A stretch of 64,000 nt of DNA, from NCBI GenBank assembly GCA_964252035.1, contig OZ176212.1; one strand, given 5' to 3'. Below, one piece after another: positions 4,685 to 64,000 of this stretch. The stretch comes from Podarcis erhardii. Lineage: Eukaryota. Under the pieces are notes generated by a model. The model was not told where the DNA came from and did no database searches. It saw only the letters and a list, made by a program, of their open reading frames with translations. Each line of letters starts with the position of its first letter. Within the stretch, counting starts at the first letter, position 1. Made by a program: the position numbers and the translations under genes.

Positions 4685-5780
4685 TTAGTTGCGAAACCCT
4701 TACAGCTGCTGGGCCGAAGCAAGAGTCCTGTGGCTGCTACTCATTTTGCTTTATGGATGGGGCCAGGTAGGTCTCACCCTTTCCATAATGTTCTTCGAGG
4801 GCGGCACGGGGAGCAGCCTATATATGAGAAAATACATAAAATTATATGGCGGTGGGGTGGGAAAGCACACGGTGCTTTTAAGCTCCACAAGAAAAACGCA
4901 ACCAACCCAACTGTACGAAAGAAAGTGGGCGGGTCAAGGAGTGGAGAAGCAAAGCAAAGAAGAGAGAGGGGGGGGGAAGCAACTCCCTCTAGTCACGTGA
5001 GAGACGAAGCGATCACATGACAGAGGGCAGGTCACGCGGCACGGTTACCTCCCCGGAAGCTACGGCGCTTTGGGGATCAGGTGACCAGAGGAGGCCAAAG
5101 GGGGGAACCGGTCACGTGGCGGGGGCTGGCTGGGTGAATGTGCCGGGCGGGCTTGGCTGAATCGCCTGGGCCTGAGGAAGGTGAAGGGAGGAGAGCGGGG
5201 CTGGAGCGCAGGGGGGCCGCCTTGTAGTTGGGGGGCAGCCGGCCAGAGGCAAAGCGGGCAGCCGGGGCTCGGGGCGGAAGCGACGGGGCTCCTTGAGTCA
5301 GGGCCTTCCTGGGGAGGTTCTCGGTTTTTTTAATTTAAAAAAGGAAAAAGGATCCCCCTTCAGGCGGAGGGTTCCTGGCTGTGATTTTGAGAGCGTCAGG
5401 CTGGGCCTAGAGTTATCGGAGCTCCGACGAAACAAGGGCCCCAATTGACGGAACCGGGAAAGGGAGGCCGAAAAGGTTGGAAAAGGCTGCGGAGGAAGTT
5501 TGCGACCCTCAAAAGCGGGGGCGGTAGATCTGGGCTGGTGGGTTTTTTAAAAAAAGCAGACTACCGGGAAGCAAAGCTTTTAGCAAAGGTTGCTGGGTGG
5601 GTGGGAGTCGCCTCGAGTGCAGGGGTGTAAGCAAGTGCGGTGCGGGGTGGAAAAAGCTTTTTTTTGCTGCTCGTAAGGAAGAAAGCTTCTGTTACGGTTG
5701 TAGGGAGGTGCCGCGTTTGGGGCTGGATCCTTGGGTTGGTTGGTTTTTCAGCCGAGAAGCGCTAACTGGGGTGGGTGGGG
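4660..5780. promoter_or_regulatory. CpG-island promoter of the NUFIP2-like gene
   Basis: Sharp rise in CpG and GC content. E-boxes GTCACGTGA 4992-5000 and GGTCACGTGG 5110-5119, ETS-like CCGGAAG 5053-5059, GC boxes. Lies about 0.5 kb upstream of the first coding exon. Confidence 0.75.
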
Positions 5781-6232
5781 TACCGTAGGGCAGACAGACA
5801 GCTAAAACGGAAAACGAGGGGACAACTTCCTCCCGAAGTTTTATACAGGTGTTTGTATACAGCGTAGGGTGTTGAAGCCTAAGCTGCGGAGGTGGAAAGG
5901 AGTGTAGGTATAAATAGAAGTAGTTTCCTTTGGTCCTTTAAGCTGCTGTAGCATTTCAGAAGTTGGGGAGCTCTGCAGGTTACCTGGCAACTTTCTCTGC
6001 TACCGAGGTGACTTTTGCAGCTGCAAGAGAGTGAATAGCTTTCAGGCACAGGCTACTAATTTGCAGTGCAGGGAAACAGAGGAAGAGTAGAGTCGCTGGG
6101 CACGCTGTGGTGTTTTGCTTGAAAAGGAGGCTGAGAGCAAGACTGTAGTCAGGACTCTGGGGTTTAGGAATACCTTTCACATCCTCGAAGCTCTATTGCT
6201 GTTGAGATCTGCATCACACACAGTCAGAGGCC

Positions 6233-6344
6233 ATGCAGAAGGAGGAGCTGGGAATGGATGAAAATCGCAACCCAGAGGAGGAGCTGCGTCTCCTTGGTGG
6301 AAAGAAGGAAAAATGCCACAACCTCAGCAACCGCATCCGGACAG
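6233..6344 (+). CDS. NUFIP2-like coding exon 1 (MQKEELGMDENRNPEEELRLLGGKKEKCHNLSNRIRT/G)
   Basis: ATG in good context (GGCCATGC), donor CAG|GTAACT. Phase 1 puts exon 2 in the NUFIP2-like frame. Confidence 0.75.
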
Positions 6345-9300
6345 GTAACTTAAACTGCATCCAGTATTTTATCTTCTTCTAAGTCACTTCTACGAAGTCA
6401 CTTCTGGTCCTCCAGAAAATGTTGGACCCCAATTCCCACGAGCACTAAGTCAGCATGACCATTGGTCAGGGATGATGGAAGTTGTAGTCCAGCAACATCT
6501 GGAGAGCCACAAGTACCCCAACCCTTCACCATCGCCAACTCAAGACTGGCTACTAAAAACCCAGCTTCTTGTGCACCCAGAGCTTTGGTGTTGGTGCTTA
6601 GCATTTTGAAACATTTCCTTTAGTTCCCAACGACCTCAGCAGATCCTTGCCCTTATCAATCCATTCACACACACCCCAAACTCCTTGCATACATCTGTTA
6701 TCCATTTAATCCTAAACTGAACTCCTGGGACAAGCAAGCTTTTTTCACCACTAGAGCGCATCCTTATTTCAATTTCCTTTACCTCAGCCCTATAGTGTCT
6801 ATCTGATTTGTGGAGCTGTGAACCCCCATCCCCCAAGCTAAGTTTCCTGCTCCCCCCCCCCAAAAAAAAGATTCAGACAGCCCATGTTGGGAATCCTACC
6901 CTAAACCATCAGCTGCTGCATCTCCACAGAATCATGCAGACTTGCCCCTTACCTGGTAAATCTCAACTTACTGGATCGCACTCCCTTCCCAGAGTTTGTT
7001 TCCTTTTCCTTACTGGGGCGGGTCCTATTTGGCTATTAATTCAGTGGCTCTGGTTTGATTAACTGCCTTTTGTAGCATGCATCTAAGTTCTAGCTGTCCT
7101 TAATGCATCTAAATGTTGAAAATAAAACCTTCTTTCTGTCACGCAGGGGGTGGAGCAGAGCTGGGCTACAGGCCAAGCCAGGTCTCCAGAGAAGGTGTGT
7201 TGTACTGAACTGGGATTGGGCTTTCCCCTTTTCCTTTCTGTCATGCTTTTTCTGCATGTTTTTCTGTTCCAGAGGTGGCTGCACCTCAGTGCTGGGTGAG
7301 GTACATTCATTCAGAGAACCTAGAGCCCTGAATGCCCACCCTCTATGCTCCCCATCTTCTCTTCCCTGTTGAAAAGATGTGGAGAAGTGATTATCTGCCA
7401 CCGTGCTTCTTTACTAGATACCCATGTGGAAAAAGTAGCATGTTCTTCATATCCCTTTCCTCCTCCTGTTACTCTCCTGGGGTATACTTAGGAGAGGAAT
7501 GAAGGCCTACAGATGGGAAAACGAGGACTCTTTAATTCTCTGGGCAGCAAGGCCAGAGCCCAGTGGCTTACAGGAAGGGATCCTAGAATTATTGGGAAAG
7601 GGTTTGAGGAACCTGAAATTGGTTAGGGCTTGAGAGAAGGAATCTCATAGGTTTGAGTTCTTCAGCATGAACACCTCTGGTTCCATTCCCCCCCTTTGCT
7701 AATCACAATGCAGAGAAGCTTGGAAACTTGAAGACAGCATGTTTTGAATGCTAAATAACCAGAAAAGCGGGGAGTGGGCTAAACCAACCTCCGAAGTGGA
7801 ATTTTCATATGATCTCCTGATGTTGCTGAACTACAACTTCCGTCAGCCCCTGTCAGTATGGCCATAAAGATGCAAAATGTGGTTCAGCAGTTTCTGGAGG
7901 GCAAAAGGTTCCTTGTACTTGTCTTAGAGTTTATAATTCATTAATAAATATCAGAAGAGGAATTCCCCCCCCCCATTTTATTGACTAAAGATCACTGTTT
8001 TGGAATTGACTGAGTTAGCAGCACGGAGAGGGGTTTTGAAATCACTTAAGTGATGTGAAGATTTTAGCCACCTGCACACCCCAGATAAACGACCTCAAGG
8101 GTATTTTAACCCATGGGCTATCTGCCTTATCTATGACCTGTTGACCCCAAACTGAGAGGTGAATGTGTCTGCATTCCAGATAAATGAAAACCAGAAATAT
8201 GTTCAAATATTTAGATATCATATTTAAGCACCTTTTAATCCCCCAACTTTCTTACCAAAACTCCAAACACTAACTGAGCAGTCTGGTATTTTGGGAGGGT
8301 TGGAATGAACTGCGCTGAGGCACCATTTTTGTTGATGGTGCACTTGACAAGAGTTAACATAAGCTCCCTACCTGCCGAAATAAAAAATGGGGTTGCTGCG
8401 GTGCTTACATTCTAGGTGTGAGAGGGTGACAAAGGGACGTGAGACAGGCATGGTCTTCACCCTTCCTCTTCTTCCTCTTCAGGTGCCTGGGAGTCCAACG
8501 GGTATACTGCTCCCTCTGAGATAGCTGACGAACCCAGTGTTCCCCTGAGCCCTTCCAACAGCCTCAACATCCGCAATCTCCAGTTGTCTGAGCGGGACCC
8601 TCCTGTTGCCCACCATCCCCACCGCTACCCTCATCGCTTTTACCATGCCCGCCCCTTCCATGCTACAGCATACCGCAAGACCTACCGAGGCAGCCCCTCA
8701 GACCGCAAGGAATGGGGACCTAGCACAAACGGCCATCACTGTGCTCCTGAGAGCATCTCCAACGGGCGGTGGCAGCACCGGCGCCGCGGCTATTCCGACC
8801 CACCCTCCCCGTCGTCGTCTCCCGAATCCGAACGAGGCAGCACCATCAAAGCCAGTGAGAAGCCTGCCGCCACATCTAATGCCGCCAACACAGCCAACGA
8901 GGATTCTGGGAAGGAAACATGGTCGCTCTTCCGGCCACTTCCCGCTTTCCCTGTCGATAGCAGCAGTGCCCGGATCATCCCCAAGATCTCTTATGCCAGC
9001 AAGCTGAAAGAGAACCTGGATCAACCGGGGAAAGCCTGCCATGTTCCTGCCTCAGCCGTCCGCACCACCAATAGCCTCCCCAACTGTGTCTTGGCGCCAC
9101 CCCCAAGTAGCCCCCCGCCATCTGACAGCAGTCGGCAACAGCACCTGGGAGCCATCTTTCAGAATGAGTGGGGCCTCTCCTTTATCAACGAGCCGGGGGC
9201 TGGGCATGGAGGGGGTGGCGGGACGGCACCAGACGTGGATGAACGAGATGCAGATGCTGGAGCATCCTGGGAGAAAATGGAAGTTAGCGACTGGCAGGCT

Positions 9301-11128
9301 GCAAAAAATTACCATCTGGACGGTAAGGTGCTGGAAGGAGCCCAGTCATTGGGCAAGAGGGCAAGGGAGGAGAACCAGTGCATGTGTGTTGAGGCTTGGG
9401 AGCTGTTCCATAGGTAGCTGGACATAGTCAAGAGAGAAGGGGTGGAAGACACAAGGAAATGCTTCACTTGGAAAGCTAGGGATGTTTGTGGAGATGGTGA
9501 GTGAAGGGACAGTCACACAGCACAAAGAACTTTTGCAGTTCATGAAAGTGGAGAGGTGTTGGGTAGTATTGGCTGTCAGAAGAAATAAAGGACAATCTTT
9601 TCACTGCTCTGAGGTTGAATTCTACTATAGTTTACATTTGCTCTACAGACTAGGGCATGAATTACTTTGGGTAGAAGATGATCAAATAGCCTATCCCTAC
9701 CTTTTCTGATTACTTTGTCAGCTATTGTTTTTAGAAGGCTAAAGAGGTAGTTATAGATGGATATCATTTAGCTCCCTCATAATTTTAAACATTGCTCCAG
9801 AGAGCACAGATTCCCACATCCAGTTTTATGTAGCTTGGGAAAAGGTTTGGATGGGCATATGACCAGTGCACTGAGACCCCAACTTTTCTCAGTGTGGCTG
9901 AACTTTCGGGGCATTGTCTTGAGAAGTGAGCAGCTTCAGCTGTGCTGGAGGGTCTTAGGGTACTGGGGCTTATTTACAAACAGTGCTTGGCTTCTTCTAA
10001 TTTCCCTTTTCCCTCCCCCCCCCTTCTAATACAGAGTGGAGACATATATGGGAGCTACACAGTCAAGGTAAGCAAATGGAGGTGCCTGGGCCTAAATCAG
10101 TGGCTTCATAAATATGACCTTTAGGGCTCAACAGTGGGCTGGATAGCTTCATGTTAAAGGGGGTATGAAGATTTGCAGTAATGTACAACAATGTGAAGTG
10201 GAAGGGAGCAGAGTCCTAGGACAGGGATGTGACTCTAAGAATTGTGGGTGTGTAATTCATACTTTCCAATCCTTGCCATATATTCAGTTGTGTCTCCCTC
10301 TCTACTGTACCACACATGCAAAAAACAAACAAAAACCCACAAATTTAATCTGACCACTCGTATTTTGAACATATCCAGCCTTTTGTGAGGATTGCTTTCA
10401 GAAGCTGAGGGGCACTGATTCAACATTTTAATACTGTGTCTTTTCGTGGTTTGCTTTTTAATGTTGTGCCCTAGATGTGTTTGAGTGCATGTGCTCCATA
10501 GCTTTGAAGCCCTAACTGGTAGGAGTTGCTGGCTTTTGATCATCTAAAACAAGTTTAAAATTACACTTTGAAAATGCTTCTGACCCCACATCATTTGCCT
10601 GGAGAACTTGAGTCGGTGACACTGAAGACAAGTGCCACTGCCAGCCTGGGCCCATGAGCCAGGCAGCCAGGCAGGTTTTCTATTCATGTAGTAGCAGGCA
10701 GGAGCAGGTAGATGCTATCTGAAAAACTGGGGTGATTGGTTCTGTGCAGTATGGGGAAGTGAATAAACTGGGCCTTATGAAGTTGTGTGATGGGAGATAG
10801 GAAAGAGAAGTACAGCTGCCGAAATCCACAACTATCTGGTGTTGGATATGGTATGGAGCTGTCTTAAACAATTCAACCAAATCACAAAAGAGCTGCATAT
10901 GTGGGAGCAGATTAATGAAGGGTCTGTTCTGTGGCCAGCCATTGAGGATAGCGGGGGGAAGAGTGGGGCTTCGGGCAGGGGTGTGTGTGTGTGTGTGTGT
11001 GTGTACACACATTATCTATGGCACATCTCCCTTCAAGGCATTGTTCCTGTTGCCATCACTTTTTCTTTTTCCATGTAGATCCTAGCAGAGTGACGGTCTA
11101 CACAGACACCTTCGATGGGAAGGGTTAA
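6233..11128 (+). CDS. NUFIP2-like protein (compact paralogue of nuclear FMR1-interacting protein 2), 4 coding exons, 344 aa
   Basis: Exons 6233..6344, 8483..9322, 10035..10067, 11079..11128. All introns are GT-AG and phase 1; total 1035 nt with one open frame. NUFIP2-type blocks: TGAWESNG, WSLFRPLPAFPVDSSSARIIPKISYASKLKENL, QQHLGAIFQNEWGLSFINEPGAG, DWQAAKNYHLDEWRHIWELHSQDPSRVTVY. Confidence 0.88.
8483..9322 (+). CDS. NUFIP2-like coding exon 2
   Basis: Polypyrimidine acceptor CTTCCTCTTCAG|, donor GACG|GTAAGG. Contains most of ORF 8584..9417 and the PKISYASK and IFQNEWGLSFINEP blocks. Confidence 0.92.
10035..10067 (+). CDS. NUFIP2-like 33-nt coding exon 3 (E-WRHIWELHSQ-D)
   Basis: Acceptor CCCTTCTAATACAG|, donor CAAG|GTAAGC. 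Aligns to NUFIP2 EMESIWNLQKQD. Confidence 0.88.
10980..11003. repeat. (GT)n microsatellite
   Basis: About 12 GT units in NUFIP2-like intron 3. Confidence 0.9.
11079..11128 (+). CDS. NUFIP2-like terminal coding exon (D-PSRVTVYTDTFDGKG*)
   Basis: Acceptor TTTTCTTTTTCCATGTAG|, stop TAA 11126-11128. Aligns to NUFIP2 DPKRIITYNEAMD. Confidence 0.85.
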
Positions 11129-11419
11129 CTTCAATAATTCCCAGGGGAAGCACCGCTAAGACATGAGGGGGGGCACATGGGGAGAGGCAAGATGCCCACC
11201 CCACCCCCCTTGAAGACTGGAGAAGCCCAAGCATCTTGAAAGGGGAAGCTCTGCCACCTGCCTACCTCCCTCCCTTTGCTGTTATAGCTCAAATTGTCTC
11301 AGTGGGGCTAACGCCTCACCTCTCTTTTTCTCTCTTGCTCTCTCTCTCTTTCTCTCTGATTTAATGCTCTGGTTTTTAATTTCTTCACATGGTTTTTAAT
11401 TTCTCTGGATTCCCCTGAA

Positions 11420-11425
11420 AATAAA
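11420..11425 (+). terminator. Probable polyA signal of the NUFIP2-like gene
   Basis: AATAAA about 290 nt after the stop, preceded by a twice-repeated TGGTTTTTAATTTCT motif. Confidence 0.55.
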
Positions 11426-12779
11426 GGCAAAAAAAGAATTTATTTAAATTCACTTCTCTTGCCTTGTCAGTGTCTCATTATTCATCGCTACACAGGTGTG
11501 TTATCAGCATGGGGTAGGTAGTGATGTGGCTCAAGGCACTGAAAATGGTTTGGGAGGGAAATTATTTTAAGGGATAGAGATGGAAAGACATGATTTTTGA
11601 AAGCACAAAGGAGAAGCTTTGGGAAGTTTACCACAAGGAACTATTAATATATGGCAAAGAAATAGTTTTATTTGTTTATCCACTGAAGAATTTATAAGCT
11701 GCATTCTCTCATAAGTATTGACAAGGTGGTATGCAACATACAAGATAAAACCACCAAAGGCATCATTAAAAACATCAGTAAATACTAGTTACCACAAAGG
11801 AAAGAAATGTGAAGGCCTGTCTATAAACAGTTTTCAGAAGATGTCTTAAAGAAGGCAGGGGTGATTTCTACTGAAATTATGTGACTTGATCAACTTGATT
11901 TAATAGAAATAAAATATTTGCTCAGTGCATCTTCTGCCAGCATAGTGACGAGATTATGCTGCTAAGCATAACTTTACTTCTAGGTATCTTTTAGATGTAC
12001 AGTGCTAGTTTACCTAAATTCTAATTAATTGTTTGATACTCTTTATTTCTATTCTCATGTGCTGAGCTTCTAAGCTGGTTGCCACTGTAAAAAAGCTCCT
12101 CACTTTAAAAAATAAGATTGCCATCTTAAAAGCCAGTGAACTGATGCGGCCAATTTACTGAAGAGTAAAGCCTACAGAGCACAATGGGGCTTCTCAGTAA
12201 AGATGCTTAGTTGCAGTGGTAATGAGGAAGTGTGTGAAATAAATCCCCACCACAATTTATCATGAAAACCAAAGGAAGGAGCCATCTGTGTCCTGTTGGG
12301 TAAGAGTGCAGTGTTGATAGCCTTCATAGGGGCAAAACATTTTCTTAGCCCAGCTGTTTTGTAGAAAAATACAGAAAGCTATGAGCCCAATCTCCCCCTG
12401 CCCCCTGAAATGGTATTAAAATCAATGGGATGGGTCCATGTAAACATTGCACGGTCTGAATTGCTTGCTTATTTGAACCTGAGCCTCCTTTTATACAAAC
12501 CTGAGCTTGGGTTGCTTTGCAGTTACTCTTTTCTGGGCTTAAAAACACAAGTAGACAAGTAACAAAAAATGAGCCATATAACTTACTGTTCCTGACCTGC
12601 ACTGGGGGAGGGGGAGGAGAAAATGCGCTCCTTGTTGGTTTGCCTCTTTTAAAAGGTGAATATTTCATAAGAGTTGACCTAAATGTAGCTAAAACCGGTT
12701 TTGACGATACAATATATTAATGATCTATAAAGAAGTACTCTTTGCCCTCGACCAAAATGGCTCTCAAAGCTTCCAGTAG

Positions 12780-16816: not shown

Positions 16817-18172
16817 ATGGAGCAGGAGTGCCTGGCTCTGGTTGCTGCCTGCGTCCAAACTTCCCAGTTGCTAGTGCAGCAATGGATGCTCAACAGGCGC
16901 ACGGTGATTTTCGCCATAGCGAGGATTCTGCAGAGGAGGCGCTTCCGCAGGTCGGCTGCGGTGCTGAGGCGCATCCTCTCAGCCAGCGTCCGCCGCAAGA
17001 GAGCCCTGCTGCGGCTTCACCGGAACGCCATCGTCTCCGTGGTCACCATGGTGTACTCGTCTTCCCCCGCGCTGCACTACGAGCACGAGCTGATGGCCTT
17101 GTCTGAGCGCTCCCACTGGATGCTTCCGAGGTGCAGCGAATGGTGGGAGCGGATGATCAACTCCGAGCAGGATGACAAGTGCTGGATTTCCTTGTTCAGG
17201 ATGTCGCGGTCCACGCTGATGTACATCGCCGAGGAGCTGCGCCCTGCCCTGCAGCGCCGGGACACGGGCATGCGGTCTCACATCCCTGTGGAGAAAAGAG
17301 TCGCCATGACTATCTGGAAGCTGGCGCACCACGACAGCTACAAGACCGTCTCGGAGCTCTTCGGGGTGGGGATTTCGTCAGCCTGCTCAATATTTGAAGA
17401 GGTGTGCGAGGAAATAAACAGCAGGCTGCTGACCCAGATCATTAAGCTGGGAGACCCGCAGGAGATCATTGAGGGCTTCAAGGAGATGGGTTTCCCCAAT
17501 TGCCTCGGCGCAATCGATGCAATCCACATCTCCATCCTCTGTCCCCCGTTCTCTGCCGACTCCTACATTAATTGCAAGGGTTTCTATTCTATGGTGCTGC
17601 AGGCCCTGGTGGACAGCAAATCCCGGTTCACAGATATCTACGTCGGCTTTCCGGAGAGGTCCCACGACTCCCGCATCTTGCACAACTCTCCGTTCTTCAA
17701 CAGCATGGACGAAGGCACTTTTGGGCCACAGGCGCCAACGGTGCTAGAAGGTGTTTCGATGACCCCTGTCATAATTGGGGATCCTGCCTATCCACTTCGC
17801 CCCTGGCTCATGAAGCCATACCCAGCGCCAAAAACCGGGGCCCAGGAAAAATTCAACGAGCGGCTCGCTAAGTGCCGAGCGTGTGTGGAGAGAGCTTTTG
17901 GGGTCCTGAGAGCTCGCTGGAGGTGCCTGCAGATGAGGCTGGATGTGAGGGAGAAGCTCATTCCTGTGGTCATAGCCACCTGCTGTATCCTGCACAATAT
18001 CTGCGAGATCAAAGGGGATGAGTTGCTGGAGCCGTTGGAAAGCCCCGCAGTGGCTGAAAGCCAGAATGCTTCAGCCAGGCCAAGGGTGCCCTTGTCAGAG
18101 GCTGGACTGACCAAGAGAGCTTGCCAGATCAGGGCTGCTTATTGCTCTTATTTTGAAAAGAACCCTGTGTAA
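16817..18172 (+). CDS. PIF/Harbinger transposase-derived protein (HARBI1/ALP1-like, DDE_Tnp_4 family), intronless, 451 aa, probably domesticated
   Basis: Uninterrupted ORF. HTH-type region FRMSRSTLMYIAEELRP...IPVEKRVAMTIWKLA...VSELFGVGISSA. Acidic residues D234 (GAIDAIH), D284 (RSHDS), D322 (IGDPAYPLRPWLMKPY), E358 (VERAFGVLRARWRCL), and C-terminal CCILHNIC. Not the HARBI1 orthologue by motif sequence or locus. Confidence 0.93.
   Translation: MEQECLALVAACVQTSQLLVQQWMLNRRTVIFAIARILQRRRFRRSAAVLRRILSASVRRKRALLRLHRNAIVSVVTMVYSSSPALHYEHELMALSERSHWMLPRCSEWWERMINSEQDDKCWISLFRMSRSTLMYIAEELRPALQRRDTGMRSHIPVEKRVAMTIWKLAHHDSYKTVSELFGVGISSACSIFEEVCEEINSRLLTQIIKLGDPQEIIEGFKEMGFPNCLGAIDAIHISILCPPFSADSYINCKGFYSMVLQALVDSKSRFTDIYVGFPERSHDSRILHNSPFFNSMDEGTFGPQAPTVLEGVSMTPVIIGDPAYPLRPWLMKPYPAPKTGAQEKFNERLAKCRACVERAFGVLRARWRCLQMRLDVREKLIPVVIATCCILHNICEIKGDELLEPLESPAVAESQNASARPRVPLSEAGLTKRACQIRAAYCSYFEKNPV

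Positions 18173-39746: not shown

Positions 39747-64000
<24,254 letters not shown>

Follow-up and report, generated by a model that had tools for sequence, protein, structure and literature searches.

The locus considered here raises the question of whether a short gene resembling NUFIP2 is the NUFIP2 of its lizard host in an altered form, or a second member of the family with a history of its own. The gene occupies positions 6,233 to 11,128 of a 64,000-nucleotide stretch of Podarcis erhardii DNA (contig OZ176212.1 of assembly GCA_964252035.1), the whole of which is referred to as the window. The second answer is favoured. With a probability of roughly 0.8, we regard the locus as a functional protein-coding gene and an ancient paralogue of NUFIP2, which most likely stems from the vertebrate whole-genome duplications (WGDs), resides in the 16p11.2-type paralogon, and would encode a small adaptor of messenger ribonucleoprotein (mRNP) complexes. 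The gene is already present in public annotation as an unnamed, uncharacterised predicted gene with a family label; the novelty concerns its interpretation and not its existence.

That the gene is real was confirmed. Its four exons (Table 1), with AG/GT at all internal borders, join to 1035 nucleotides (nt), corresponding to 344 codons followed by TAA, and all introns are in phase 1. This agrees with the first-pass annotation, made from the letters of the stretch, which had proposed four GT-AG exons, phase-1 introns and a 344-amino-acid (aa) open reading frame (ORF). It had also remarked that the ORF track covers only part of exon 2, and indeed the mechanical ORF list gives 8584-9417 only. Exon 3 measures 33 nt in every orthologue and in the NUFIP2 of Danio. 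Exon 2 alone matches the Pfam family PF15293 (NUFIP2) with 97.3 bits (E 1.4e-27), which is far beyond chance given the cutoff of 27. The product of the joined exons is 99% identical to the 344-aa isoform X2 of NCBI LOC114581571 from Podarcis muralis (protein P0001 of our collection), with 2 mismatches over 344 residues.

In a word search, orthologues in other squamates were 86-92% identical and those of turtles 41-50%, with lower values for frogs, caecilians and others, and the public models all bear a precomputed Pfam NUFIP2 match. The window gene is orthologous to zebrafish si:ch211-214j24.10 and to "uncharacterized" or "NUFIP2-like" LOC genes in squamates, turtles, amphibians, coelacanth, ray-finned fishes and cartilaginous fishes. 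Several automatic names of these orthologues are misleading, namely "formin-like protein 7", "translation initiation factor IF-2", "predicted GPI-anchored protein 58" and "splicing factor, proline- and glutamine-rich-like", as well as plain "NUFIP2" in Bombina and Microcaecilia. A literature search found no paper naming the zebrafish gene under its identifier si:ch211-214j24.10, no match for NUFIP2 combined with ohnolog, and nothing relevant for NUFIP2 and lizard. The proteins of this short type are 508-540 aa long in coelacanth and axolotl, ~400-460 aa in frogs and caecilians, 330-360 aa in amniotes and sharks, and 260-316 aa in teleosts, a range that fits progressive spacer loss. Caecilians carry two short-type proteins on one chromosome-scale record, in Rhinatrema (P0027/P0036, under different LOC names and 84% identical) and in Microcaecilia (P0029/P0038), which suggests a lineage-specific duplication.

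Transcription was assessed in runs of ~100 million letters that hold 22-34% of the sampled words of the stretch, roughly the share expected if mRNA alone is present. Four such runs, guessed to be RNA, were compared over 6100-11400. In two runs of a close relative, which belong to two studies, contigs show GT..AG joints at 6344/8483 and 9322/10035; the joint at 10067/11079 is seen in one of these runs (X5). All three junctions that had been singled out for checking were thus found in transcript-like contigs of a close relative. Contig depth is 100-200 in exons versus 5-10 in introns; since a processed DNA copy would not yield this ~20-fold contrast, the contigs are taken as spliced mRNA. The other two runs show thin intronic cover only, which hints at tissue-limited expression.

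A 48-nt cassette exon, absent from the four-exon model of the first-pass annotation, lies within intron 1. All 48 nt are identical in the window, Rhineura and Sceloporus, i.e. in a lacertid, an amphisbaenian and an iguanian, with cag before the exon and gt after it. Its flanks (7108-7230) are ~95% identical, even though dS, the synonymous divergence, of exon 2 between these lineages is 0.3-0.65. This suggests that the exon and its flanks may be constrained at the nucleotide level, e.g., for splicing control. The exon is skipped in the RNA-like contigs of the close relative.

The gene is under purifying selection. Codon alignments of exon 2 from the window, Rhineura, Sceloporus and Candoia gave ratios of non-synonymous to synonymous divergence (dN/dS, or omega) of 0.09-0.12 at a dS of 0.32-0.69, and no frameshifts were seen in the squamates, turtles and amphibians examined; frameshifts or a dN/dS near 1 would have spoken for a decaying copy. 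In most pairs, omega is 0.03-0.05 in the conserved blocks and 0.11-0.15 in the remainder, so even the "spacers" are constrained within squamates. The earlier proposal that the gene kept short motifs and lost spacer is supported with one caveat: blocks are shared with NUFIP2 and the protein is half as long, but the spacers that are left are themselves under purifying selection in squamates. The last exon and 3' untranslated region (3'UTR; window 11035-11496) share 87.7% identity with Rhineura, compared with 78.8% for the exon 2 region with flanks; the 3'UTR is conserved.

The distinction between paralogue and orthologue was addressed with a careful unrooted tree of 48 proteins (506 columns). 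It separates a short-type clade from true NUFIP2 with 100/100 support. The short clade holds the window gene together with squamates, turtles, frogs, caecilians, axolotl, a 508-aa coelacanth protein, paddlefish and sharks, and the true clade holds mammals, a 644-aa coelacanth protein, sturgeon, bowfin and teleosts. When membership of the true NUFIP2 orthologue group was tested, the window gene fell outside it, across the 100/100 branch. Branches within the short clade are long. An exhaustive profile search over 1.84 billion representatives, in a library clustered at 50% identity, returned 80 clusters in total, which were sorted with clade-specific profiles and named through cluster look-up. 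Short-type clusters among them come from teleosts (several named si:ch211-214j24.10), bowfin, sturgeon, rays and one alligator; sharks and rays thus carry the short type. All relatives of the window gene score higher on the short-type than on the true-type profile, and a second, enlarged tree retained the split at 100 support.

Both types occur in a single species in Latimeria (P0053, P0183), Polyodon (P0049, P0198), Chanos and Salarias. The genus Amia stands on both sides of the split through two species (P0217 from A. ocellicauda and P0126 from A. calva), and Acipenseriformes are represented on both sides. As same-species pairs fall on either side, the duplication predates the bony-vertebrate ancestor. 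The clade split and the species with both types bear out the earlier claim of paralogy, and the window gene is classed as a paralogue of NUFIP2, not as its orthologue. The further claim that no human counterpart is known at this locus was upheld, as none of the 80 clusters of the exhaustive search is a mammalian or avian short-type cluster. No bird protein appeared in the searches, and absence from bird assemblies is weak evidence. Judging from these searches, the gene is not found in mammals or birds and seems eroded in alligator.

The gene structure indicates how the copy arose. Exact exon mapping gave exon lengths of 112/840/33/50 nt in squamates and 145/1683/33/53 nt in Danio NUFIP2, with the three phase-1 introns at aligned residues. 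Turtle, frog and paddlefish exon lengths are similar to those of squamates, and the shark model lacks the first exon. Since intron positions and phases match those of Danio NUFIP2, retroposition is excluded and the gene is a DNA-level duplicate, which would fit genome duplication.

The neighbourhood adds the synteny. The window is collinear with the Rhineura locus. There the upstream neighbour is a KCTD13-like BTB_2 gene (337 aa), and the downstream one is TMEM219, in which a Harbinger-type ORF is embedded. Within their 10-kb flanks, Sceloporus and Candoia likewise have the BTB_2 gene, of 337 and 348 aa respectively, together with the Harbinger ORF. A turtle shows the order C2 gene (DOC2-like), BTB_2, short-type gene and TMEM219, and in a shark a kinesin with an HHH_3 domain (KIF22-like) adjoins the short-type gene. 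The KCTD13-like, TMEM219, TAO-kinase, DOC2-like and KIF22-like neighbours are genes of the human 16p11.2 set. No informative neighbours were found in the short-type flanks of Xenopus and Polyodon. The gene had been described as lying beside TAOK2. A TAO kinase is indeed nearby, among neighbours of the 16p11.2 set, but it is not adjacent: its first exon lies ~28 kb downstream, with TMEM219 and the Harbinger-derived ORF in between. The gene is therefore placed between a KCTD13-like gene and TMEM219 in the 16p11.2-type paralogon, and NUFIP2 is placed in the 17q11.2-type one with TAOK1. Human NUFIP2, TAOK1 and SEZ6 lie within one 17q11.2 deletion interval (PMC4886423), and the NUFIP2 side of the proposed paralogon is drawn from human data. 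In fishes, no kinase was found within the 10-kb flanks of true NUFIP2 in Danio and Salarias.

With regard to the protein, an AlphaFold2 model based on a 36-sequence alignment has a mean predicted local distance difference test score (pLDDT) of 52.6. The sole confident element is a C-terminal helix (residues 305-328, pLDDT ~90-95), accompanied by a small hairpin at residues 262-272 (pLDDT ~72). The protein is thus predicted to be almost wholly disordered, in line with the first-pass description of NUFIP2 as a disordered protein. Three segments are kept in both clades, namely block A, block B and the C-terminus. Across the 36 sequences, which represent both clades, the invariant blocks FPVD..PKISYASK and WGLSFI are present in this order, together with a C-terminal Y...P..V..Y region. 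Block A aligns to residues 336-370 and block B to residues 498-522 of a 697-aa mammalian NUFIP2. Block A is the most conserved block of the family, with essentially no change between sharks and lizards or relative to NUFIP2. The four blocks that had been named for the human protein are all present in mammalian NUFIP2 (P0155, P0159), with counterparts in the window in the same order.

Human NUFIP2 binds Roquin-1 directly through aa 255-411 with a dissociation constant (KD) of 182 nM, in competition with the N-terminus of FMRP (PMC5775257), and alignment to mammalian NUFIP2 places block A inside this fragment. NUFIP2 also binds G3BP1 and GABARAP directly (PMC9533235). By homology, the short protein would most likely act as a small adaptor in cytoplasmic mRNP complexes, with block A as a putative linear motif that docks the same class of partners as in NUFIP2.

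A gene of the same origin could have taken on another function, in which the protein no longer has the partners of NUFIP2 and relies on block B and the C-terminal helix for some unrelated process. This is possible, though less probable than the adaptor role. The entire N-terminal third of NUFIP2 is missing from the short protein, as is the acidic-Ser/KKRK block, and the branches of the short clade are long. Moreover, the alligator model P0246 keeps the N-terminus, block B and the helix, lacks block A, and then runs into unrelated sequence; it groups with turtles on a long branch. A protein 80% identical to it (P0251) and one from the ray Mobula (P0239) show the same absence of block A, with block B and the C-terminal region retained. 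It may be that the alligator gene is eroding or that its model is faulty. In favour of a retained role, block A of the window protein has the invariant columns of the family, as preserved from sharks to lizards and in NUFIP2, and omega in the blocks is 0.03-0.05.

Several observations weigh against the favoured explanation, an ohnologue that serves as an mRNP adaptor. The alligator and ray proteins raise the possibility that block A is not an essential part. Binding to FMRP, Roquin or G3BP1 and localisation to stress granules are known only for mammalian NUFIP2 (PMC5775257, PMC9533235), and would carry over to the short type by analogy. The runs that provided the splice junctions have no record as RNA. 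The TAO kinase of the window is assigned by sequence to the TAO group as a whole, with the PDB entries TAO2 and TAO3 scoring almost alike against it, and may be TAOK1 or TAOK2. No lamprey or invertebrate outgroup was identified among the 80 clusters, the tree is unrooted, and sharks are not basal within the short clade, where support is weak. Finally, a word search with an eel NUFIP2 query retrieved no true NUFIP2 of this lizard or of any squamate among the best 120 of 434 matches, which belong to fishes, mammals and coelacanth.

For want of an outgroup, the link to the first and second rounds of vertebrate WGD (1R/2R) rests on synteny. An ancient small-scale or segmental duplication, in which a block with the ancestors of TAOK, KCTD and NUFIP2 was copied locally or by translocation before the bony vertebrates, is unlikely. 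The unrooted tree would allow it. The TAOK and KCTD13 groups have three members each, compared with two for the NUFIP2 family, a count that would also agree with it. Against it, the 16p11.2 set accounts for several neighbours that are unrelated to one another, the partner NUFIP2 lies within the 17q11.2 set, and TAOK1/2 and TNFAIP1/KCTD13 are classic 2R pairs. The proposal of an ohnologue, as first put forward, is thus supported and not proven: paralogy, DNA-level copying and the 16p11.2-type neighbours stand, and WGD is more probable than ancient segmental duplication. The paralogue most likely arose before the bony-vertebrate ancestor by the vertebrate WGDs.

It is very improbable that the gene is a translocated and shortened NUFIP2 orthologue, the sole copy in this genome. 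The eel-query result would suit such a history. The 50%-identity library, for its part, folds most tetrapod NUFIP2 under mammal representatives; it also includes a 564-aa representative (P0209) that shares 73% identity with a mammal. Sharks yielded no true NUFIP2 with a name. This explanation was rejected on the tree, where the window gene joins, at 100/100 support, short-type genes from species that also have true NUFIP2 (coelacanth, paddlefish, Chanos and Salarias), and where two species of Amia stand on either side; in addition, a turtle likewise has the gene flanked by the KCTD13-like gene and TMEM219. Least credible of all is a retrocopy or decaying pseudogene: marsupials do have "NUFIP2-like" copies of true NUFIP2, intronless in Monodelphis, but three conserved introns reject a retrocopy here, and an omega of ~0.1, spliced contigs, and ORFs intact in all squamates, turtles and amphibians examined reject a pseudogene.

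Table 1. Features of the gene and its surroundings in the window.
Feature	Position	Strand	Basis or remark
CpG-rich upstream stretch, possible promoter	4750..5750	.	GC 0.55-0.63; CpG observed/expected 0.68-0.83
5'UTR	extends upstream of 6100	+	run X5 contig reaches past 6100
Coding exon 1	6233..6344	+	ATG + 37 codons + 1 nt; N-terminus same in other squamates
Alternative 48-nt cassette exon, phase 1 to 1	7147..7194	+	matches exon of 360-aa X1 isoform, Rhineura and Sceloporus
Coding exon 2, 840 nt, residues 38-318	8483..9322	+	splice borders, Pfam, contigs, codon alignment
Block A, residues 184-218, W.LF.P.P.FPVD...PKISYASK.KENL	8920..9024	+	invariant columns of the family
Block B, residues 256-280, LGAIFQN.WGLSFINEP	9136..9210	+	family columns; hairpin in model
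C-terminal helix, first part, residues 305-317	9283..9322	+	AlphaFold2
Coding exon 3, 33 nt, remainder of helix	10035..10067	+	contigs; exon mapping
Coding exon 4, 50 nt, stop TAA 11126-11128	11079..11128	+	junction in run X5
3'UTR, AATAAA at 11420, end approximate	11129..11445	+	X5 contig spans 11077-11319 and beyond
PIF/Harbinger-type transposase ORF (DDE_Tnp_4)	16817-18172		intact
TAO-kinase exons	~39.7-44 kb	+	closest solved relatives TAO2, TAO3
775-aa open frame	51995-54322	+	downstream of TAO-kinase exons

The CpG-rich stretch upstream of the gene is a possible promoter, inferred from base composition only. Intron 1 contains repeat copies at ~6448-6511 and ~7700-7870, where summed contig depth rises to 24,000 with many loose ends in all four runs; they probably represent an abundant expressed element resembling short interspersed nuclear elements (SINEs). 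A (GT)n microsatellite occupies 10985-11005 in intron 3, shortly before the last exon. The Harbinger-type ORF is intact, 451-455 aa long, and found at the same place in four squamates (at the loci L001, 22876-24231; L004, 23259-24626; and L005, 22008-23363, besides the window); in Rhineura it lies inside the called range of the TMEM219 gene. The 775-aa frame has no Pfam or ESM Atlas match and is presumed to be a long terminal exon of the TAO kinase.

The working parts of NUFIP2, a disordered protein that partners FMRP, Roquin and G3BP1, are poorly mapped. An ancient half-size sister gene under strong purifying selection reveals the segments kept for >400 million years, namely block A, the WGLSFI block and the C-terminal helix, and its orthologues offer tractable models in zebrafish and Xenopus. 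It also adds one further gene to the 16p11.2/17q11.2 paralogon, lost in humans. Many ohnologues lost in mammals are already known, and the gene adds one more uncharacterised member to a known family. More tentatively, it could be a naturally minimised NUFIP2, in which block A, block B and the helix suffice for docking of the FMRP-family/Roquin type and for entry into mRNP granules, the cassette exon acts as a regulated isoform switch, and the loss in mammals and probably in birds, together with crocodilian erosion, reflects a rewiring of the pathway. If this were true, the 344-aa lizard protein or the 260-316-aa teleost proteins would provide a ready map of the functional core of NUFIP2.

Among known genes, the orthologous models (LOC114581571, Xenopus LOC100145486 / XB5854344, and the zebrafish gene) show species-level differences only from the window gene. 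The marsupial "NUFIP2-like" genes of Monodelphis, Vombatus and Petaurus (P0079, P0230, P0229) are also extra members of the NUFIP2 family. Their ORFs are intact and encode 507-609 aa, their sequences group as a single clade nested within mammalian true NUFIP2, and the copy in Monodelphis (L009 5001-6803) has no introns. Most likely, therefore, these genes arose as retrogenes and do not correspond to the window gene; apparently they represent an old, retained retrogene common to American and Australian marsupials. The closest comparison is with NUFIP2 itself (82-FIP, PF15293), which belongs to the same Pfam family and likewise has four exons, the third of 33 nt, separated by three phase-1 introns whose positions are homologous. 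Block A, block B, a VP.SA..T..S. stretch and the C-terminal helix follow in the same order in both proteins, and both are predicted to be mostly disordered. At 344 aa, however, the window protein is half as long as NUFIP2 (~695 aa). Missing from it are the His/Gln-rich N-terminus and the acidic-Ser/KKRK block, along with most of what separates block B from the C-terminus in NUFIP2. The two genes also differ in position: the window gene belongs to a separate ancient clade in a 16p11.2-type region, whereas NUFIP2 lies in a 17q11.2-type region.

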